From Pavona decussata (taxonomy: Eukaryota): DNA of 64,000 nucleotides. Below the pieces are notes generated by a model. It did no database searches. It saw nothing but the letters and a program-made list of their open reading frames with translations, and was not told where the DNA came from. The position numbers were made by a program, and so were the translations under genes. How positions within the stretch are numbered: position 1 is the stretch's first letter; each line of letters opens with the position of its first letter. Location of the stretch: assembly GCA_977016875.1 (NCBI GenBank), contig CDRNST010000104.1:5084001-5148000 (forward strand). Direction: 5' to 3'. This document shows positions 4,046-18,204 of this stretch, piece by piece.

Positions 4046-7000
4046 ATGGATGCTGATGCGAATCTTCAAGAACATTTGAAAAAATGTCGCTGGGTGCGTA
4101 TAAACTGGCTGTGGTCGAAAGTTGGAAGAGTGAACCTTGGTATATTTTTAAGGTTCAATCCGCTCGTTAGCTTGCTCTCGGCCTGTATCATCTGGGGTTT
4201 CGTGGCATGGTGTATGGTGAAGTCAGATGCTGCTAACGAAGAAATGGGAAAATGGAAGATCTGGATTACTGAGAAGTTCACTTGGATGTACATCGGTACA
4301 CAGGACATCTGGGCTGTGATTATCATCATGCTGTACTTCTCTAAGTATTCCAACATGAAGCTCGGACGAGACGATGAAGAACCTGAATTCAACGATGCGA
4401 CTTACTTCACGATGTTGTTTGCGGCTGGTATTGGCATCGGCCTTTTTTACTTCGGAGTTGGTAAGTTAGTTTCGAATTCTTTTATTGAGACGCAACCAGT
4501 ACAGACGATTGGGGGGGAAGTAGTTAAAAACGTGCGAGAGTCGCCTTACCATTCGAAAGTTTGGCGAAAAGGCAAACACCGAGTTTCGTTCGCGTTTATT
4601 TCCGTTCGAAAGTTATAATCTAAAGTTAACTTACAAATCGGCATGGTAACATTCCTATAATGTATTGCGGAACTTTCTTCTTTTCAACCTACGCAGTGCA
4701 GATTGTTAAAAGTCAGGACACGTTCTTTGAGGTTTGTTTCCTAACGCCTTGATCATGCCCTTGACCTTCTAGAACTAACGCTGATGTGTCCAATCGCATA
4801 CAAGTGAACACGACACAGCCGTTAGTTTGCAAAGTTTTTAAACGTAAAACACGCGACCTTGGTAATAAGTGATACACGTTCCCACCTTTCTTTGCTGAAC
4901 GTATAAAGTTTATCAATGTTTTGAATTCAAAGAGAAGATTTTGAAGGCCTCATGTGAAATTTTCAGTGTATGAATAATTTAACTACATGTAAAAAATCAT
5001 GCGTCTTGATCTAAAACTAACAAACCTTTGCTACGTGTCGCAAGACTTTACTTTACGAACTACGTAATGTTGGTGCAAATTTCCCGTGAAATCTTAGTTT
5101 GTTTGTTCCGTTCAAATATGCAAAGATTACTTTCTTTGTAAATACCGGACCGAAAAACGGATAACAAAATCAAACTTATTACGCCGCAAATGTTTGATTT
5201 CAGAACAAACTCTCTCACGCATGAAACTGACTGGGGCTACACGAAACCCAAGAACCTTCTAAATCTTTCCAGCCTCTCTGTGTGTATTTTACACGCCTCC
5301 TTGCGCAGAGTCAACTTAATTGATGACTTTTGTCGGTAAAAGTGCATCAATGGCCAATAGCCTGCTATTGTTTTGGTGGTAGCAAAGAAGACAACGGAAA
5401 TTTACTGAGCACAGAAATACACGATTGAAAACTGCAGTGTCATAAAAACTCATGATCGTTATTTCAGGTTAAGATTACAATCCGTTATGAATCATTGCCC
5501 GCGTTAAGTCAACATTTGCTCACTTCCAATTTGAGATAACGGATCACGTCTACTTTGGCACCTTGTGCCGGCGTCACGCTGATAAATAAGGTGCACAAAT
5601 CTTAACTTAGTAGGCCGCTTGACCAAAAGCAGGTAAAATTCTTTGAAAATCGCGGAAACATACATAACGTCTCTCATAAGAGACCTTAGTTGATTCTAGT
5701 CGGTGTCAATGCCGGTGGACCAAATACAACAATGTGACATTCGAAGAACAGCTATAGCCCCTGATATTTCTTGTGGTGATTAGTTTTGTTTTTCAATATG
5801 ATTTCGCAAAGCAAAACTTATAAAGATTCAAAATCCTTGGAAATAAGGCAAACTGACCACTAGAACGACTTGTCAGATGACAAGGAAGAGCGATCCAAGA
5901 TGGGTTTCGAAGTTGGACAATAATGTGTTACATTGTTGACATCACAGGAATTTTCGAATTTGGGATCATAGCACGGAGGCAATATCGTTTTCGTGCACGT
6001 AGCGTCTTTTCGTTATTTTCCAGCGGCGCTTACAAGAAGATCTTTCTTTGTTATAGTGAAGCTATTAATCAAAGACAAGGATAATACAGCCACCCAAATG
6101 GGAACGTAAACTAACCAACATTAACTTCCGATCTTAGTTCTAAGGTATACGTGAGCATTACATTGCGTATTAAGCACATGTCATCTTGGTAGAGGACCAA
6201 TATTAACTGCAGCCTTACGCAGCAATAAAAGCCTTCTTGTTGATAAAAATTGTTCAAGCGTTTCTTCTATGCCGCGGCATGCCATTATTTGCATACTGAT
6301 TGTATATGGAAGAATGTTTTTCCCTTTTGAGTTGACAAGAGTGGCAGATCTTTGTTTCAGTGAAGCATAAGGCATGATTCGCCATATTTCTCTGGTTTTA
6401 GCCACACTGATCAGCTGCAGGGTTTCCATTTGCGAGAAAAAAATTTCAGTCCGATCCAAGTTTTCTCACGACAAACTAATTCAGCGTCATTTGTTCTTTT
6501 TTTATCGCAACAAGGGGCAAGGCTTTGTTTGCCTGTTGCTTAACGACGCAGATTAATGACCATTAATAAGCGTCAATGAATCGTTTCATTTGTTTTGAAT
6601 TGTTGTTTAAGTTAGTATGCATGCAGCCGTTTTAATTCTTATCTGCTTCCCGCCCAGACACAGTCAACATGGACAGCTTTATTTAGGAAAAAAAAAAAGG
6701 GCGGCCCCTTTAGAGATCAAAGCAGCGGGAGCCCTCATAATTATAACATAATTATATCACAACAAAACTATAAAAACATATGGAAAGATTTCAGCACAGC
6801 CCCATACAGTTATTATACATGCATCACTGTCATACTAACCCTCTTACACAAAGAACGAGCATGAATAGAGTTTGAGCCGCAAAATGTACACACAATTAAT
6901 GTATGGGGCCCGGGCCGTGCGGAAATCTTGGCAAACTTATACCCGCTAACAGAAAAGGACTATATAAAAGGTTATTTTAACACTAGTCACAAAAGTATAT

Positions 7001-10000
7001 CGAAAAAACACAAAGCAATAGAAAATTAAAAACCATCAAACTTAAACCTACGGACACTATATATCAATTAGAGTAAAAAGAACGTTTGCAGTTTTGGAGC
7101 TAATCCTCAGTTAGTGAAGTAAGTTACCTCCAATTGCCTAGTTGTGCGAGATGAGGAGCATTTTCTTTTCCTTTTCCTGGAAAACATAAAATAACTACAG
7201 TGAACTCTCTCTCGGATGTAAATATTCGGCAGCATCCCTTTCTACATGAACACAAAAACACCGCTCGACAGTTGTCATTGTAAATGTAAATGTAAAAAAA
7301 ATGTAAATGTAATTTATTTACCCACAAAGCACCAAAGAGCTCGAGGAAATTGTTCAAAGGTGTCCGTGCTTTCCAGGTCGAATTGGAATTTGGAAATGTT
7401 GGTTTTTGTGGCGGCAGGAAAACCGGAGAACACGGTGAAAAACCCTCGGAGCAATGACGAGAACCAACAACAAACTCAACCCACATTTAACGCCGAGGCC
7501 GGGAATCGAACCCGGCCCACATTGATGGGAGGCAAGTGCTCTCAACACCGCTGCGCTATGCCTACTCCCCTGCTCTCATTCGTATTCGTGATCAAACGAA
7601 ACCACAAAAGAACTTTCAACCGATCGACTAAAGGCCAAGACGCTACTGTTTTGCAAACTGGTCTGTCACTAGTGAACTCTTGATCTTTCTCATTATAACT
7701 CTGTTCCATTCCTCTTTTCTTTTTTCAGCTGAGCCCATTTTCCATTACGCCCCAGGAAACTATGGCAATCGTTACTTCGCAAGGTAAGCTTGAATTTGAA
7801 TATTCGTTACACGCTTTGTTCAGTTTAAAAAAAGCCACATGAATATTTGGGCATCTTAAAAGAATTATATTTCACCGAACTTCTTCTTCCTTTAAGCGTA
7901 CGGGATAAAGGACAACGAACAATACACAGGCATTAAAAAAAAAGAGACTGCAGACGTACATAGAGGAGAAAGGATTGAGAATATGGAAAATTTTAAGATT
8001 GCCGGTTTCTTTGTCCACCAATTCCTGACTGAGTTGCCATTCTTCGTCAAGGCGCTAGCTACCTACCCATGTTTTGTAGAGCATTTTTAAAATCATTTAA
8101 TTTGTTGCAAAGTTCATTTTTAAAGAATCCATGTGGATTGATCACAAAATTGTTCTAAAAACTAGTAAGTTTTCAAGAAGCATAAACCATGACGAATGAC
8201 CAAGATTTCTTGTGTTTCCTTAAGGTTACCCTATACCTTCAGAGGTGTCTCGTGTTTAAGTGATGTAGCGCGTCCAGTTTAAATTGTAGATAACTAAACC
8301 CGTATATCAAATTAAAGCTTATAGAGCTGGCTATCAAACTATACCAAGAATTTTGAAATAGAATAAATCGTCAAATTTTTTCACGACCTCTAAATGCGAG
8401 CGTCCTAATCACCTTTTTAAAGCTACAAGTCAAACCGAATTTTGTTTTTCGCTAATTTAATTTGCTCCTCAGTTTCCGGACCCAAAGCGCTAAAAAACGT
8501 GTCTGCGTTTTCCCATATTCAACCTCAATGAAAAGTTATAGAGCATTTTCGAAATAGGATGAAAAAATGTGGAGTGATCGTACAAAAATCGCTCTGGGAG
8601 AAAAAATATTTCGAAAGAACAGTTCGCAGACACAGTTTTGTTGTTTATATGTTAAACTAGCTACTGTCCATATTTGAAGGCAAACGAACAAATTCCTTTT
8701 GAGTTTTAACTCTTTGAAGTGGCTCCTCCAAGTGAAAAAATTGAGTCGAGAAAACAGAGCTAAAAATTCTGCAATTCGTTTAAATTCAAAATTCTTGGTT
8801 TAGTTTGATAGCCAGCTCTATAAGCTTTAATTTGATATAAGAATTCAGGTATCTACAGTTTAAACTGGACGCACTACTGTACATCGCGTGGACGCGAGAC
8901 ACCTCTGAAGGACACATTTTGACCTACCCACGGATGCACACTCGTTTGCCGGGGATACCATGGTGTACTGGCAACTAGAAGATCCCAAATGATCCGTTAG
9001 ATCGGCGCTTAAATCCTTTTATCAAGATGAGTTTACCATGATTTAGGACATTTAAAGGCATAACCTTTTATTTTGACGTAGCAAGGGTTTCGTTTTGTGT
9101 TATCAGTGAGTCCGTCTTACAGCCATGTGGTTAAGAATGAGCCTGCAAAAGTTGAGATTAGTTTTCTTGCAAGAAGCGTACCCATCATCCACAGGGTGTA
9201 ATGAATAATCGTGAATTTGTCACGTTTTGAAGCGACCATGTTTGATACTGTTTGATACTATTTAGGTACACTGATAACCAGCTGGCCCAAGATGCCATGA
9301 ATCTGACTTTCTTCCATTGGGGTGTTCATGGATGGATTGTGTACGTAGTGGTCGGTCTACTCTTGGCTTTCGTGTGCTACAGGCAAGGCCTTCCCATGAC
9401 CGTCCGCTCCTGCTTTTACCCACTCATTGGAGACAAGATCTACGGATGGATGGGCGACGTCATCGACGTCCTCTCGGTCTGTGGTACCATGTTTGGGGTC
9501 TGCACCAGTCTTGGCTTGGGCGCCATACAGCTTAATACAGGTGACATATGGGGTTGGGGAATAGGGCCGAACCACGGTGCTATATACTGGAATGGCGTTC
9601 CTTTTTATCTTTAATCTATATCCGGATGCTGCCAACAAACTTTCTCCTTTTAGTTGGGTTCGTTTACAGACAAACCAACTTGATATAAAAACGTTTCTTA
9701 GCCAAGAAGTTCGTGATACAAACATGCCTACAGACATCGAACCCATAAGAGAACAGCCGATTCCAACAGAATAATAAATTTGGACAGACGGTTTTTCGTG
9801 TCCTAAAAAGCGAGTATGTTAATTGTTGCAGGGTAATAATTACTCCTTTCCCTAAAATCTACCACTGAGATTAATCCTTTCCCTAAAAAATTTATATAGC
9901 AGAACAAAATTTTGCGGCCTGTTGATGAACTGACTTCGTAAAAGGAATTTTGAAATTGAAGCTAGGAGTACTTTTCATGGAAATGTTTATTATACTGTAT

Positions 10001-11884
10001 GCCGGGTGGTATTATTGAACTTTCTATGCTTGGATTAAATCCTGAAGGCTCATTTCTTTGGAGCTCTTTATTATACTGTTAGCAAGGTGGTTTTAAATTT
10101 TGTGTTAGGATGAAATCTTCAAGTGTGACAATTCAAATGAAAGTTATAGACTAAGGAACAACCAGTCACTCATAGGTAGCGGAGAGCGTTGTCTTCTCCG
10201 CATTACCTACGGATAGAATAAACCTATTTCTTTCTTTGCAACGTTTGAGAAAGGTTGGAACATAGGCTCTTATCAACAGTTGCTTGACCCGGATCATTTT
10301 CAACATTTACTTTAATTAAGACACAATTCTATTGCCTTTCCTTGTCATTAGCATTAGTAATGCATGTACCCCCGTAATATTTAATTGATATTCCTTTATG
10401 GCACAGGTATCCATCGCCTGAACAAGGATATTGAGGTCTCCACCACCAATCAAATCATCATCATCTGGTGCGTGACTGCCTGCGCTACCGTATCTGTGAT
10501 CACTGGACTCAAGCTTGGAATTCGACGACTAAGCGAGATCTGCTTTTCAATTGGCATGCTTCTCATGCTTGTTGTGTTCTTCTATGACGATACCTGGTTC
10601 CTATTGAACTTGTACGTACAGAGTTTTGGTTACTATATTCAGTGGATCATACAGCTTGGTTTCCACACGGACGCCTTCGCACAAATGGGCAATTCTCAGG
10701 ATAAAAAGGAAGTGATCAACTGGATGAATGACTGGACCATCTTCTACTGGGGATGGTGGATTGCTTGGAGCCCTTTTGTAGGAATGTTTATTGCCAAAAT
10801 TTCCCGTGGTCGCACCATCAAGCAGTTTATTAACGCCACAATGACGGCTCCCATTGTCTATTCTTTCATGTGGCTGACGATCTTCGGTGGAGCGGGAATC
10901 AGAATGGAGCGTTTGGCATTCCACGCCAACGTCACCTGCGACTCTATTCTCGGAGGGAAGACGTCCACTGAAGGCTTTCACAAATTGTACCGTCTGTCCT
11001 GCCGCAGTAAGGATGATATGTGGTTTGATGTCGTGGAGCAGTATGGCGACATTGGCTCAGTCCTGTCCGTCATATCCCTGTGTGGCATCATACTTTACTT
11101 TGTCACCAGTTCTGACAGTGGATCTCTAGTCATAGACTGCCTCTCTGCAAATGGTGATCCAGACCCCCCAATCCTTCAGCGTGTATTCTGGGCGCTGACA
11201 GAAGGAGCCACCGCCACGGCCCTGTTGTTTGCCGGAGGTCCCAAGGCGCTAACAGCTCTACAGACGGTGTCCATAGCAGCAGGCGTCCCTTACACCATAC
11301 TTCTGTGCTTCATGTGCATTGCATTATGGCGTGCTGTCCATATGGAAGCTGGCGTCCTTGACCCTAATGGACCAGCTTTCAGCGTTGATCTTCTAGAGGT
11401 TGTCAGCAACCCGACTTGTCAATCCGTGGGGAAGGTTATCATTGCAATATTCTTCCCATGGTATCCCCTGGGAATGGCTGCTTGGAGGCTCAACAACTCC
11501 AAAGGAAGTAAAGTGTCCTACATGCTGACCCTGGCCGTCCCATTCTACTTGTGGGTCCTCGGTATGGCCTTAGAACCAGCTGTCGAGGGCTTGAGTTACC
11601 TGGCCTGGACAGTGCTGTTCGCATTTTTCGCGTATGGCACTGCGATCCGCATCGGCATCCGCGAAAAGTATGGCATCAATGGCAACATGGTGGAAGACTT
11701 CTTCGCTGTGATGTTACTGTACCCTTTTGCCGCCTACCAAATGGATCACTACATGGATAATCCTCCCTACCCTCCCCTGTATGACACCCAGAACGTCGAC
11801 GGCTACGGTAACGGAAAGGGCGTGGCCTACGAGAACAAGGGTGTTGATGACGTCCCACTCCAGAAAATAGACACTGCATTTTAA
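4046..11884 (+). CDS. BCCT-family (BetP/OpuD-like) glycine betaine transporter, 4 coding exons, with C-terminal PLAC8-like extension; 740 aa
   Basis: Exons 4046-4460, 7729-7783, 9266-9540, 10407-11884 all have GT-AG boundaries with compatible phases (1,2,1) and total 2223 nt. BCCT motifs: TM3 MLFAAGIGIGLFYFGVAEP, TM4 FHWGVHGWIVY, TM8 signature WTIFYWGWWIAWSPFVGMFIAKISRGRT, TM10 YFVTSSDSG. Start context gcaacATGg. Confidence 0.93.
7279..7573 (-). mobile_element. tRNA-derived SINE, near full length, in BCCT intron 1
   Basis: Minus strand has A-box-like TAGCGCAGCGG, B-box GGTTCGATTCC, body TGTGGGTTGAGTTTGTTGTTGGTTCTC and a (TTTACA)n tail. A related fragment lies at ~13110-13255. Confidence 0.8.
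8236..8911. mobile_element. Non-autonomous DNA transposon with ~120 bp TIRs, in BCCT intron 2
   Basis: CCTTCAGAGGTGTCTCG...TATCAAATTAAAGCTTATAGAGCTGGCTATCAAACTA..CCAAGAATTTTGAA is mirrored at ~8785-8911. No clear TSD. Confidence 0.85.
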
Positions 11885-15539: not shown

Positions 15540-18204
15540 ATGGACGACAACGTTGGCGTTCCGAGGACGAGCGAGGGATTATCGGTAGTGTCTTCGTTAT
15601 CTGAAGTCAACGAGCAAATCGCCATCGCCGAGCACATACCGACAGAACACGAAACTGCCACAACTGCTGTCTTCCATCCAGGCGAAGAGGCTTCGAGCAC
15701 GAATGTTAGCGGCCATCCTCAATGCGAAGTGCAGGTCGTGAAAGTCACGAACGGGAATGTCAGTATTAGTTTCGCTACCCCCGCTCCGTCGGCGTCGCAT
15801 ATCCAAGCTTCTCAGTCCACCCTGCAACCTATTCAGGAAGTCATCGCTGACAGTCCCGCTCATTCCACGAGGTCGTCCAGTCCGAATTTGCAAGATTCAC
15901 AAGCCGTTGCGACGATACAACAAGCAGAGCAAGATGAAATGTCCGCAGGAAACCAACACGACGACGGTTCGCCTTTATCGAGGGCAAAATTCGAGACCCA
16001 GGGAAAATCGCCGTGGGATGGAGCCATGAACGCAGACGTGCTCATTGTTCGCTGCAGGAATGAAACGGCTGAGCTGTATAAGAATAAGCTGGGATCTGGA
16101 GGTCGTGGAAAATGTATAAAGGTGAGAAACGAGTTACAAGAGATCTTTGTTGTGTTTAATAAAGTGATTTTCGATTAGCTGGTGAGTGTACACTCTTTAA
16201 ACACCCGTTATATGCAGTGTGAAAATTTACGCTCTATTACGAAGTCCGTAACTTGCCTTATGCCGATTTACGGGGTGGTTTTTACAGTAAGAATGTTCAA
16301 GGATTTAGATATAAGTTGATTAGTTTTGTTTTACATGTATACCGTGGAATGAAATATTATTAATGAGCTTAATATTAGTATTGCCCCTTACGTAGGTGCA
16401 GGACATGACATGTTTAGCTAGCCCTCCCGCTGGTAAGTTGTCCCAAGGCTGCAAGGGGAACCCAGGCTGAGGAGGGGCACTTGCCTTTTTTGAAATGTCC
16501 CACAACTACAAAAATGTACCTGAGGCCCTTGGGCTTACCGTTGATTTCACTACTAGACCTATGCCAACTTTGAAATCAAAACTGGTCTTCCATCAATCAT
16601 TTGTGGTACCAGTACCTCACAAGACTTAGGTTGGTTACGTGGCGTGTCGAAAGATGGCACATTGAACTTGATAGTTCACTACATACCAGTTATGCAATGC
16701 TTTCGAGTGGTATACCGTGAAATATCCCACAAATGACTTGATTTTTCTTAGTATACATGAGTGGGATATTCATGGTATACCACCAGAACGCAAATTGCAT
16801 AACTAATTTATCCCATACCACTCATTGAATTAACACAAAACATCACTCTGTAATACTTTAACAGCAAATACAATCAGTGAAAAAATATTCAACAGATTGG
16901 CAACATTTCTTAAAAGTACATAATTTTGATAAAAAAAATTAAAAAATATAAATAGGTACTGCTCATTAAATGTAGAAAAGTCTTTCAACGAAAGGTAAGA
17001 AGTAAGCCGGGATTTTTTTGTGGAAAACTACCCCTTGCATACCACACAATATGCAACAGGTTTCTAGCTTTCTGATTGGCTGTATTCTCTATGGCATGGG
17101 TAAACATGCATGTATGTATGAAACATTGGAAATGGCTGTTACCATACCATACCTAGATCTGTTACAGTTTTTTTTTGTTATTGGATCCTCCTGTCCTTTT
17201 TTTCTTGGGGGGTGGGAGGTGCATAAGGTACGTCTAGGGACATTTTCTGGAACTGTGTAATCAATAACATTTGATAGAAAATCTACAGACATTGTAGCCA
17301 GGTTTCCATTGGTATCAGCTACAGATGAGAAAAAGGAATTTTGAGTTTGATATATTTTTTATGGTGCATGTTCAAATTACAGTATCAAGAACACTGGATG
17401 ACACCATCAGAGTTTGAAGCTCGCTGTGGAAGGGCATCTTCGAAGGATTGGAAGCGCAGTATTCGTTATGGTGGACGCACCCTTCAGTCTTTAATTGAAG
17501 ATGGAATCCTTGTTCCTCATGCCATCTCCTGCACATGTGCAACATGTTGTGATGATGATACACTGGTATGAAAAATTGTCATTTTCTCAAGTGTTTACAA
17601 TGAGACAGGAGAGCAAAACTACATTTTACATAACATAAATAATGCCTTTTATTCAGCAAGGGTTTTAATTTTTTTTTTCATTAGTACATTGTACATGTAA
17701 TGTTGATGACAGCAATAAGTAAAACCACAAAAATTATTTCCCTTAACAAAAAAAATAAATAAATAATAATAATAATAATAATAAAATAATCAGATTAATG
17801 AGCAATTTCACCCAGCAGTTTTCATATCTGACAAGATCTAGAACTTTTTTGAGATTGAAGAGCATGGGTATATCTGGAAAGCTTTTACTGACATACTGAA
17901 CCACTGTCAGAGCAGGCCCACAGCCTGTACAGTTTTTAAAGCTGACAAATTATCACAGTGAATATAAGAACTTAACTTACAGTCCTGAGTGTACTTGGCA
18001 GAGACAGTTTTCATGTCTTTTGTCCTCTATTGTTATTTTTCTTTTTTTAGATTTTTATTAGCCTAAGACACACAATACAATTTTTACAGTACTACGCACT
18101 ATTTTTAGTACTTACAAAGTTACAATACTTACAGTGTTCACAATACTTGCAGTATCTTACAATATCTCGCTTTACTAATTAACAATTTTATTATTCCATG
18201 AACA

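Follow-up and report, generated by a model that had tools for sequence, protein, structure and literature searches.

What lies beyond the last transport helix of a BCCT carrier in the coral Pavona decussata, and does it belong to the transporter at all? The window analysed here, a stretch of 64,000 nucleotides (positions 5,084,001 to 5,148,000 of contig CDRNST010000104.1, assembly GCA_977016875.1), holds a BCCT gene whose last open frame continues past transmembrane helix 12 (TM12). An earlier note, made from the letters of the window, had claimed that the continuation is a PLAC8-like membrane domain stripped of its cysteines and fused to the carrier within one exon. The frame, at 10385-11884 (+), runs for 499 codons without a stop and leads from TM12 uninterrupted into the C-terminal domain. 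When it was compared with Pfam, BCCT was matched at residues 7-320 (E 2.4e-85) and PLAC8 at residues 345-454 (42.8 bits, E 1e-10), and the fusion of the two in a single exon and frame was thereby borne out. The segment at 11378-11749 (+) also translates as the note had quoted it, from FSVDLLEV to AAYQMDH.

Gene model and transporter core

The frame is the last exon of a four-exon BCCT gene. The exons were placed by tblastn with a 740-aa database orthologue, P0001, and the splice sites were read from the sequence; the exons total 2223 nt, equal to 740 codons and a stop, and all introns are of the canonical GT-AG type. The closest named orthologues, the 741-aa RefSeq proteins of Montipora foliosa and M. 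capricornis annotated as 'probable glycine betaine transporter', fall in one 90% cluster with P0001, and P0001 is 87% identical to the last exon. The gene comprises the following parts:

4046-4460 (+): exon 1, with the ATG, the BCCT N-terminus, the first transmembrane helices and the G-I-G-I-G substrate/Na+ motif (tblastn to P0001 residues 1-142, 85% identity; GT donor at 4461; Pfam BCCT positions 1-103)
7729-7783 (+): exon 2, a 55-nt micro-exon, AEPIFHYAPGNYGNRYFA (tblastn to P0001 residues 139-157; AG acceptor 7727-7728, GT donor 7784-7785)
9266-9540 (+): exon 3, BCCT profile positions 118-205 (Pfam BCCT E 3.8e-37; tblastn 95% identity to P0001; AG 9264-9265, GT 9541-9542)
10407-11884 (+): exon 4, the remaining BCCT helices to TM12, the PLAC8-like module, a probably disordered tail and the TAA stop (11882-11884), stop-free up to there and with both Pfam domains in one frame (AG acceptor 10405-10406)
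10407-11344 (+): BCCT core of exon 4, including the signature helix WTIFYWGWWIAWSPFVGMF and TM12 (PF02028 E 2.4e-85 over positions 204-484 of the 485-position profile; TmaT and BetP matched in the orthologue model)

At 740 codons, the model is as long as the proteins on transcript-length contigs (740 aa on 3.3 kb) and agrees in size with the Montipora RefSeq orthologues (741 aa). In related corals splicing or termination ahead of the module was not indicated, given that these transcript-length contigs and RefSeq models of related corals (740-741 aa) each represent one product.

The BCCT profile (PF02028; Transporter Classification 2.A.15) was matched across the core, with E 4.1e-26 for exon 1 and the values listed above for exons 3 and 4. 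The full-length fold and its comparison with the PDB were run on the orthologue P0001, not on the joined exons of the window. The core of the P0001 model has a LeuT-type fold, which is shared by the bacterial BCCTs BetP, TmaT, BetT and CaiT, and in Foldseek it matched TmaT and BetP with E 1.6e-20 and a target template modelling (TM) score of 0.73-0.75, at 36% identity to TmaT and 32-33% to BetP. Since the orthologue core superposes on these structures (E about 1e-20, target TM-score 0.73), the transporter part would be conventional. The Gly-x-Gly-x-Gly motif is present as AGIGIGL in exon 1, and the Trp-rich signature helix is that of exon 4; both bind substrate according to the literature on BetP and to PMC7240134.

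The product of the gene is a secondary transporter of 740 residues that belongs to the eukaryotic clade of BCCTs; a betaine-type osmolyte (glycine betaine, dimethylsulfoniopropionate (DMSP) or choline) is its likely cargo, and transport is probably coupled to Na+ or H+. The cnidarian and other eukaryotic BCCTs described previously (PMC7240134, PMC13547399) belong to the same gene family, keep the Gly-x-Gly-x-Gly motif and the Trp box and are longer than prokaryotic BCCTs. Coral BCCTs are present in multiple copies and retain the betaine-binding residues (Ngugi et al. 2020, PMC7240134), and a prasinophyte relative, PaDT, carries DMSP (Nat Commun 2026, PMC13547399).

Identity and conservation of the C-terminal module

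The proposed kinship to PLAC8 was upheld by sequence profiles as well as by predicted structure. When the last 168 aa alone were compared with Pfam PLAC8 (PF04749) they scored 43.1 bits (E 8.3e-11), above the curated gathering score of 34.4 bits. A profile built from 100 BCCT-attached modules was aligned to the canonical PLAC8 encoded on contig C56 of the same genome (hhalign 92.9%, E 3.8e-7), and in this alignment FSVDLLEV was paired with WSNGLCSC, FFPW with CAPC, and IREKYGINGN..ED....Q with IREQKGIDGS..ND....Q.

With the 100-module alignment as input, AlphaFold2 (AF2) folded the window module confidently on its own (mean predicted local distance difference test score (pLDDT) 91.8, predicted TM-score (pTM) 0.85), with helices at module residues 24-35, 38-48, 55-74, 82-108, 114-123 and 125-137. 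The helices 55-74 and 82-108 coincide with the two hydrophobic helices that had been noticed earlier (Kyte-Doolittle (KD) 19-residue maxima 1.63 and 1.48). The nearest fold in the ESM Atlas was that of a chlorophyte BCCT cluster (TM-score 0.83); outside BCCTs the nearest were an oomycete PLAC8 cluster (query TM-score 0.69, target TM-score 0.61, 126 residues aligned, root mean square deviation 3.1 Å) and two plant MCA clusters carrying PLAC8 (0.62-0.66), all of which are predicted models. Among solved structures, a search of PDB sequences with the module profile returned only noise (E at least 0.19), Foldseek of the module against the PDB gave nothing at E<=0.001, and the best VIA-align hits among 48,161 chains were generic helical bundles (best Z 4.6). 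No solved BCCT structure covering the module was found in the PDB by these sequence and fold searches.

Judged by these profile matches and the predicted fold, the last ~135 residues are a genuine, probably membrane-embedded PLAC8-family domain without its cysteines. The module and the tail that follows it were divided as follows:

11348-11758 (+): cysteine-poor PLAC8-fold module, module residues 1-137 (Pfam, hhalign, pLDDT and oomycete TM-score values as above)
11378-11401 (+): FSVDLLEV, counterpart of the PLAC8 N-terminal W-S-x-G-L-C-x-C with both Cys replaced (hhalign to canonical KEWSNGLCSC)
11417-11491 (+): helix-Pro-helix hairpin with FFPW at the canonical xCPC site, likely at the cytosolic membrane face (AF2 helices 24-35 and 38-48)
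11510-11569 (+): predicted extra TM helix 13, with a PFYxW motif (AF2 helix 55-74; KD maximum 1.63; K/R-rich loop before it and acidic EPAVEG after it)
11591-11671 (+): predicted extra TM helix 14, ending in the near-invariant R101 and the invariant R105 (AF2 helix 82-108; W87 kept in 90 of 100 modules)
11687-11758 (+): C-terminal PLAC8 core helix EDFFAVMLLYPFAAYQMDH, canonical CCPxC cysteines replaced (AF2 helices 114-123 and 125-137; D117 and Q131 invariant, Y125 in 91 and P126 in 92 of 100)
11759-11881 (+): fast-evolving, probably disordered cytosolic tail ending T-A-F (11873-11881; pLDDT below 50 for the equivalent P0001 residues 707-740)

The profile match, the core residues and the predicted fold are thus common to the module and the PLAC8 family (PLAC8/onzin, cornifelin, PCR, FW2.2/CNR and MCA1/2). 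In MCA proteins the PLAC8 domain is also C-terminal in a larger membrane protein, as it is in the BCCT fusion. Between its two conserved motifs the module has ~30 residues more than this coral's own 110-aa PLAC8, which would leave room for a second membrane helix.

The family is defined and named by its Cys-rich motifs, and it is in these that the BCCT-attached module differs. The cysteine loss described in the earlier note is evident in the counts: the 142-aa window module has a single Cys, at a variable position, whereas the genome's canonical PLAC8 of 110 aa (L001:1459-1788:-) has 11. Neither CCXXXXCPC or CLXXXXCPC nor CCPxC is present in the window module, and at the canonical Cys positions only 1 to 13 of the 100 diverse modules have Cys. 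The non-Cys core of PLAC8 was found in alignment with the canonical coral protein, namely R..(I/M)R..Y.I.G....D followed by P and Q in the last helix. R105, D117 and Q131 occur in 100/100 modules and R101 in 99/100, and W87, R101, I110, G112, Y125 and P126 are all at least 90% conserved. At the first Cys site 88/100 modules retain P37 and 58/100 retain W38, with Cys at position 36 in 12/100 and at position 38 in 1/100. The module has kept the polar core of the fold and the non-cysteine core residues of PLAC8 (P37, R101, R105, I110, G112, D117, P126, Q131) and dropped essentially all cysteines.

The earlier mapping of the replaced motifs was right at one of two sites. FFPW lies over the canonical xCPC (CAPC in this coral), as had been proposed, while LYPF was placed at CxPC one residue out of register: with the invariant Asp as reference, CCPxC lies over L-L-Y-P-F.

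Selection on the module was examined through the ratio of nonsynonymous to synonymous divergence (dN/dS) between paralogues, given only for pairs with finite dS, as most pairs are saturated. The ratios for the module were 0.07-0.22, and in the young pair L007/L012 (dS 0.14) the module had 0.096 versus 0.17 for the core. This showed, at the level of coding sequence, that the module evolves as expected of a domain under purifying selection. The tail after it evolves freely (dN about 1 between paralogues); despite this, 49/70 distinct family C-termini end in the class-I PDZ-ligand pattern [ST]-x-[VILFM], in keeping with a tail in the cytosol and with polarised placement. A PPxY-like WW-domain motif in the tail, PPLY (11771-11782, +), was dropped as a functional lead, as it is not conserved in the orthologues P0001 and P0004.

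Distribution of the fusion and surroundings of the gene

The note had treated the module as something gained by a bacterial-type carrier; as a special event in this lineage, this did not hold. All eight BCCT loci of the genome (one each on contigs C20 and C104, three each on C78 and C80) have the module and TM5-12 in one open frame, and 7/8 paralogue modules scored above the Pfam PLAC8 cut-off, the eighth reaching 34.0 bits. Beyond this genome, named carriers of the fusion include Clytia and Hydractinia (Hydrozoa), Ulva mutabilis (Chlorophyta), Discosporangium (Phaeophyceae) and Mucochytrium (Labyrinthulea). Given its presence on all eight paralogues and in these eukaryotic groups, the fusion is an old trait of eukaryotic BCCTs as a clade and not a cnidarian invention.

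In a word-index search, 138 proteins were matched by the C-terminal 180 residues, and among the matches listed 118/120 were already tagged PF04749+PF02028; the tagged fusions include entries from Pocillopora, Desmophyllum and Porites, several of them on mRNA-sized contigs of 2.7-3.3 kb. With HMMER and a 26-sequence module profile, 434 clusters were found at E<=1e-3 and 136 at E<=1e-10 among 1.84 billion proteins. From the best 150, 20 long representatives were scanned and all 20 were BCCTs with the module at the C-terminus. In 19/20 the PLAC8 score was below the Pfam cut-off or absent, and distant modules mostly scored 17-32 bits; ordinary annotation therefore misses the module. Among 60 representatives with at least 40 upstream residues, BCCT TM11-12 lay just upstream of the module in 57. 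The three exceptions were two mis-modelled BCCTs and P0177 (146 aa), whose upstream sequence is unrelated, cysteine-rich and uninterpretable. No clear copy of a free-standing module was seen among the profile-search representatives examined, and among the sequences examined the module is restricted to BCCT carriers. An abundant metagenomic fusion sits on gene-dense contigs among eukaryote-type genes, e.g. LSM and Ocnus.

The seven other paralogues are located at 1.13-1.16 Mb on C78, at 3.67 and 6.20-6.29 Mb on C80 and at 2.40 Mb on C20 (loci L005-L020), and several form tandem or near-identical pairs (L007/L008, L009/L010). In these seven, one large last exon comprises BCCT positions ~112-484 and the module, and this block is split by an extra intron in the window gene. 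Canonical Cys-rich PLAC8 genes were found in a tandem cluster (G000:C318:262803-265700; L002-L004, L011), two copies of which carry in-frame TAA stops, and as the single gene on C56. On contigs from a gene-dense genome of eukaryotic plankton that carry P0244 (L026-L028), the module-bearing BCCT adjoins a gene for a 659-aa PEMT (phospholipid methyltransferase) protein, and this arrangement is conserved in three samples.

Elsewhere in the window, a 260-aa open frame at 32020-32802 (+) matched the rhodopsin-family G protein-coupled receptor domain (7tm_1, E 3.5e-31), and a 212-aa open frame at 15540-16178 (+) gave a partial SAND domain match (30.1 bits, cut-off 22). Runs of N, which are assembly gaps or masked stretches, are located at 30996-31288, 47100-47230 and 48004-48143. 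An Rfam scan of the whole window gave no match.

Topology, role and significance

In BetP the C-terminus of the BCCT is cytosolic. In work from 2009 attributed to Ressl and colleagues, BetP is reported to end in a charged, soluble helix by which K+ and lipids are sensed. This type of osmosensor helix is absent from the window protein, in which TM12 is instead followed, within ~10 residues, by the hydrophobic module of PLAC8 fold and its two predicted additional membrane helices. Helix 55-74 is preceded by a K/R-rich loop (RLNNSKGSK), an acidic loop (EPAVEG) separates the two long helices, and an R/K-rich segment (IRIGIREK) follows helix 82-108. Taken with the positive-inside rule, this charge pattern suggests that the first of the two long helices crosses the membrane outward and that the second returns. 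We infer that the module adds two transmembrane helices and that the hairpin, the last helix and the tail are on the cytosolic side.

If so, the chain would pass from TM12 into the hydrophobic module, leave the cytosol through helix 13 and return through helix 14, with the helix-Pro-helix hairpin and the hydrophobic C-terminal helix lying at the cytosolic face. Back in the cytosol, it would continue as the disordered tail to the PDZ-ligand-like T-x-hydrophobic end. The module would be a built-in accessory domain beside the transporter core in the bilayer, at the site held in BetP by the soluble osmosensing helix, and from there it would tune the activity, stability or placement of the carrier. 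On balance we consider it probable, with appreciable room for doubt, that the locus encodes a betaine-type BCCT in four exons with a Cys-less PLAC8 accessory membrane module that controls activity, stability or placement.

Several observations weigh against this interpretation. The topology is drawn from hydropathy, charge distribution and the AF2 model, and TM14 (KD 1.48) and the hairpin (KD 1.36) are moderately hydrophobic. Outside the module the full-length P0001 model is of middling quality (mean pLDDT 64.7, pTM 0.61), and the PDZ-ligand reading is a plain motif match, counted over sequences that are themselves related. When 185,579 prokaryotic genomes were scanned for sequence patterns, no locus with the module was found, which is a weak negative because the patterns were tuned to cnidarian sequences.

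The module might alternatively be an assembly or trafficking device, which would act in oligomer formation, exit from the endoplasmic reticulum or membrane sorting and have no direct effect on the transport cycle. This is compatible with an accessory domain and, although doubtful, is a serious possibility: oligomers of plant PLAC8 proteins have been reported (review PMC12467093), different compartments are predicted for the coral BCCT clusters (PMC7240134), and the PDZ-ligand-like end after the module is conserved. Bacterial BCCTs, however, trimerise without such a domain, as seen in the structures of BetP and TmaT, and the polar residues placed at the cytosolic face are so highly conserved (all three invariant positions and R101) that more than a sorting tag is suggested. 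We think it very improbable that the module keeps a PCR- or MCA-like handling of ions (movement of Cd, Zn or Ca) in a bifunctional protein. It is homologous to PLAC8, PCR and MCA proteins with a shared fold, and PCR proteins also have two membrane helices (PMC12467093). Against this, CCXXXXCPC, regarded as the key to how plant PCR proteins recognise metals (PMC12467093), is absent, at most 13% of modules have Cys at the canonical positions and the only Cys of the window module is at a variable one. As the Cys motifs needed for metal handling by PLAC8 are lacking, metal transport by the module is unlikely.

Hardly credible is the reading of the fusion as an artefact, in which neighbouring BCCT and PLAC8 genes were read as one or a hydrophobic sequence matched PLAC8 by chance. 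Apart from general caution, only the scores of most distant modules, below the Pfam cut-off, could be cited for it. Against it stand the continuous frame in eight paralogues, with no stop and no splice signal needed, and the mRNA-length contigs and RefSeq models that give a single product. A chance match is further opposed by the E-value of 8e-11 above the gathering score, the hhalign result, the PLAC8 structural neighbours and TM11-12 before the module in 57/60. The artefact was rejected on these grounds of frame continuity, single-product models and profile and fold matches.

A far broader role for the accessory domain can be imagined, and we regard it as unlikely: the Cys-less PLAC8 fold would be a universal regulator of eukaryotic BCCTs, a membrane sensor of lipid, tension or osmotic state that replaces the bacterial C-terminal helix. 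By Rosetta-stone logic, free PLAC8 proteins (PCR, FW2.2/CNR, cornifelin, onzin) would then dock on transporters and tune them and would not form channels.

The earlier note knew of no description of this architecture. No paper naming both BCCT and PLAC8 was found in the literature searched, and in this respect the statement stands; the domain pair (PF04749+PF02028) is, however, already tagged automatically in public databases. The architecture is thus visible in automatic annotation and gene models, yet apparently undescribed in the literature searched. The words 'C-terminal' and 'PLAC8' do not occur in either PMC7240134 or PMC13547399. The latter gives an average of 765 aa for eukaryotic BCCT-like proteins versus 581 aa for prokaryotic ones and allowed up to 17 predicted helices; the module makes up most of these ~180 extra residues. 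What is new here is the spread of the fusion over several eukaryotic lineages, its restriction to BCCTs, the family-wide loss of Cys with the PLAC8 core and fold kept, and the proposed topology. For the 'Plac8' epidermis marker of Nematostella, a paper on a coral cell line lists as counterpart an Acropora tenuis gene annotated 'Glycine betaine transporter OpuD' (PMC8270879, Table 2), so this marker, too, may belong to the BCCT-PLAC8 fusions instead of the free PLAC8 proteins.

The Pfam PLAC8 threshold misses most members of this BCCT-attached subfamily. The biochemical role of the PLAC8 family is, to our knowledge, disputed, and we know of no structure for it. As a natural PLAC8 variant that appears to have the fold but not the cysteines, and that is physically joined to a transporter whose fold is known, the module offers a handle to separate fold-dependent from cysteine-dependent functions of PLAC8. 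As far as we know, BCCTs are the only systems that have been proposed for betaine and DMSP uptake in corals and many marine algae, and they therefore bear on the exchange of osmolytes, nitrogen and sulphur in reefs and plankton. A conserved domain of ~135 residues at the place of the best-studied bacterial osmosensor, overlooked in two dedicated papers, is an obvious candidate regulator of eukaryotic BCCTs.

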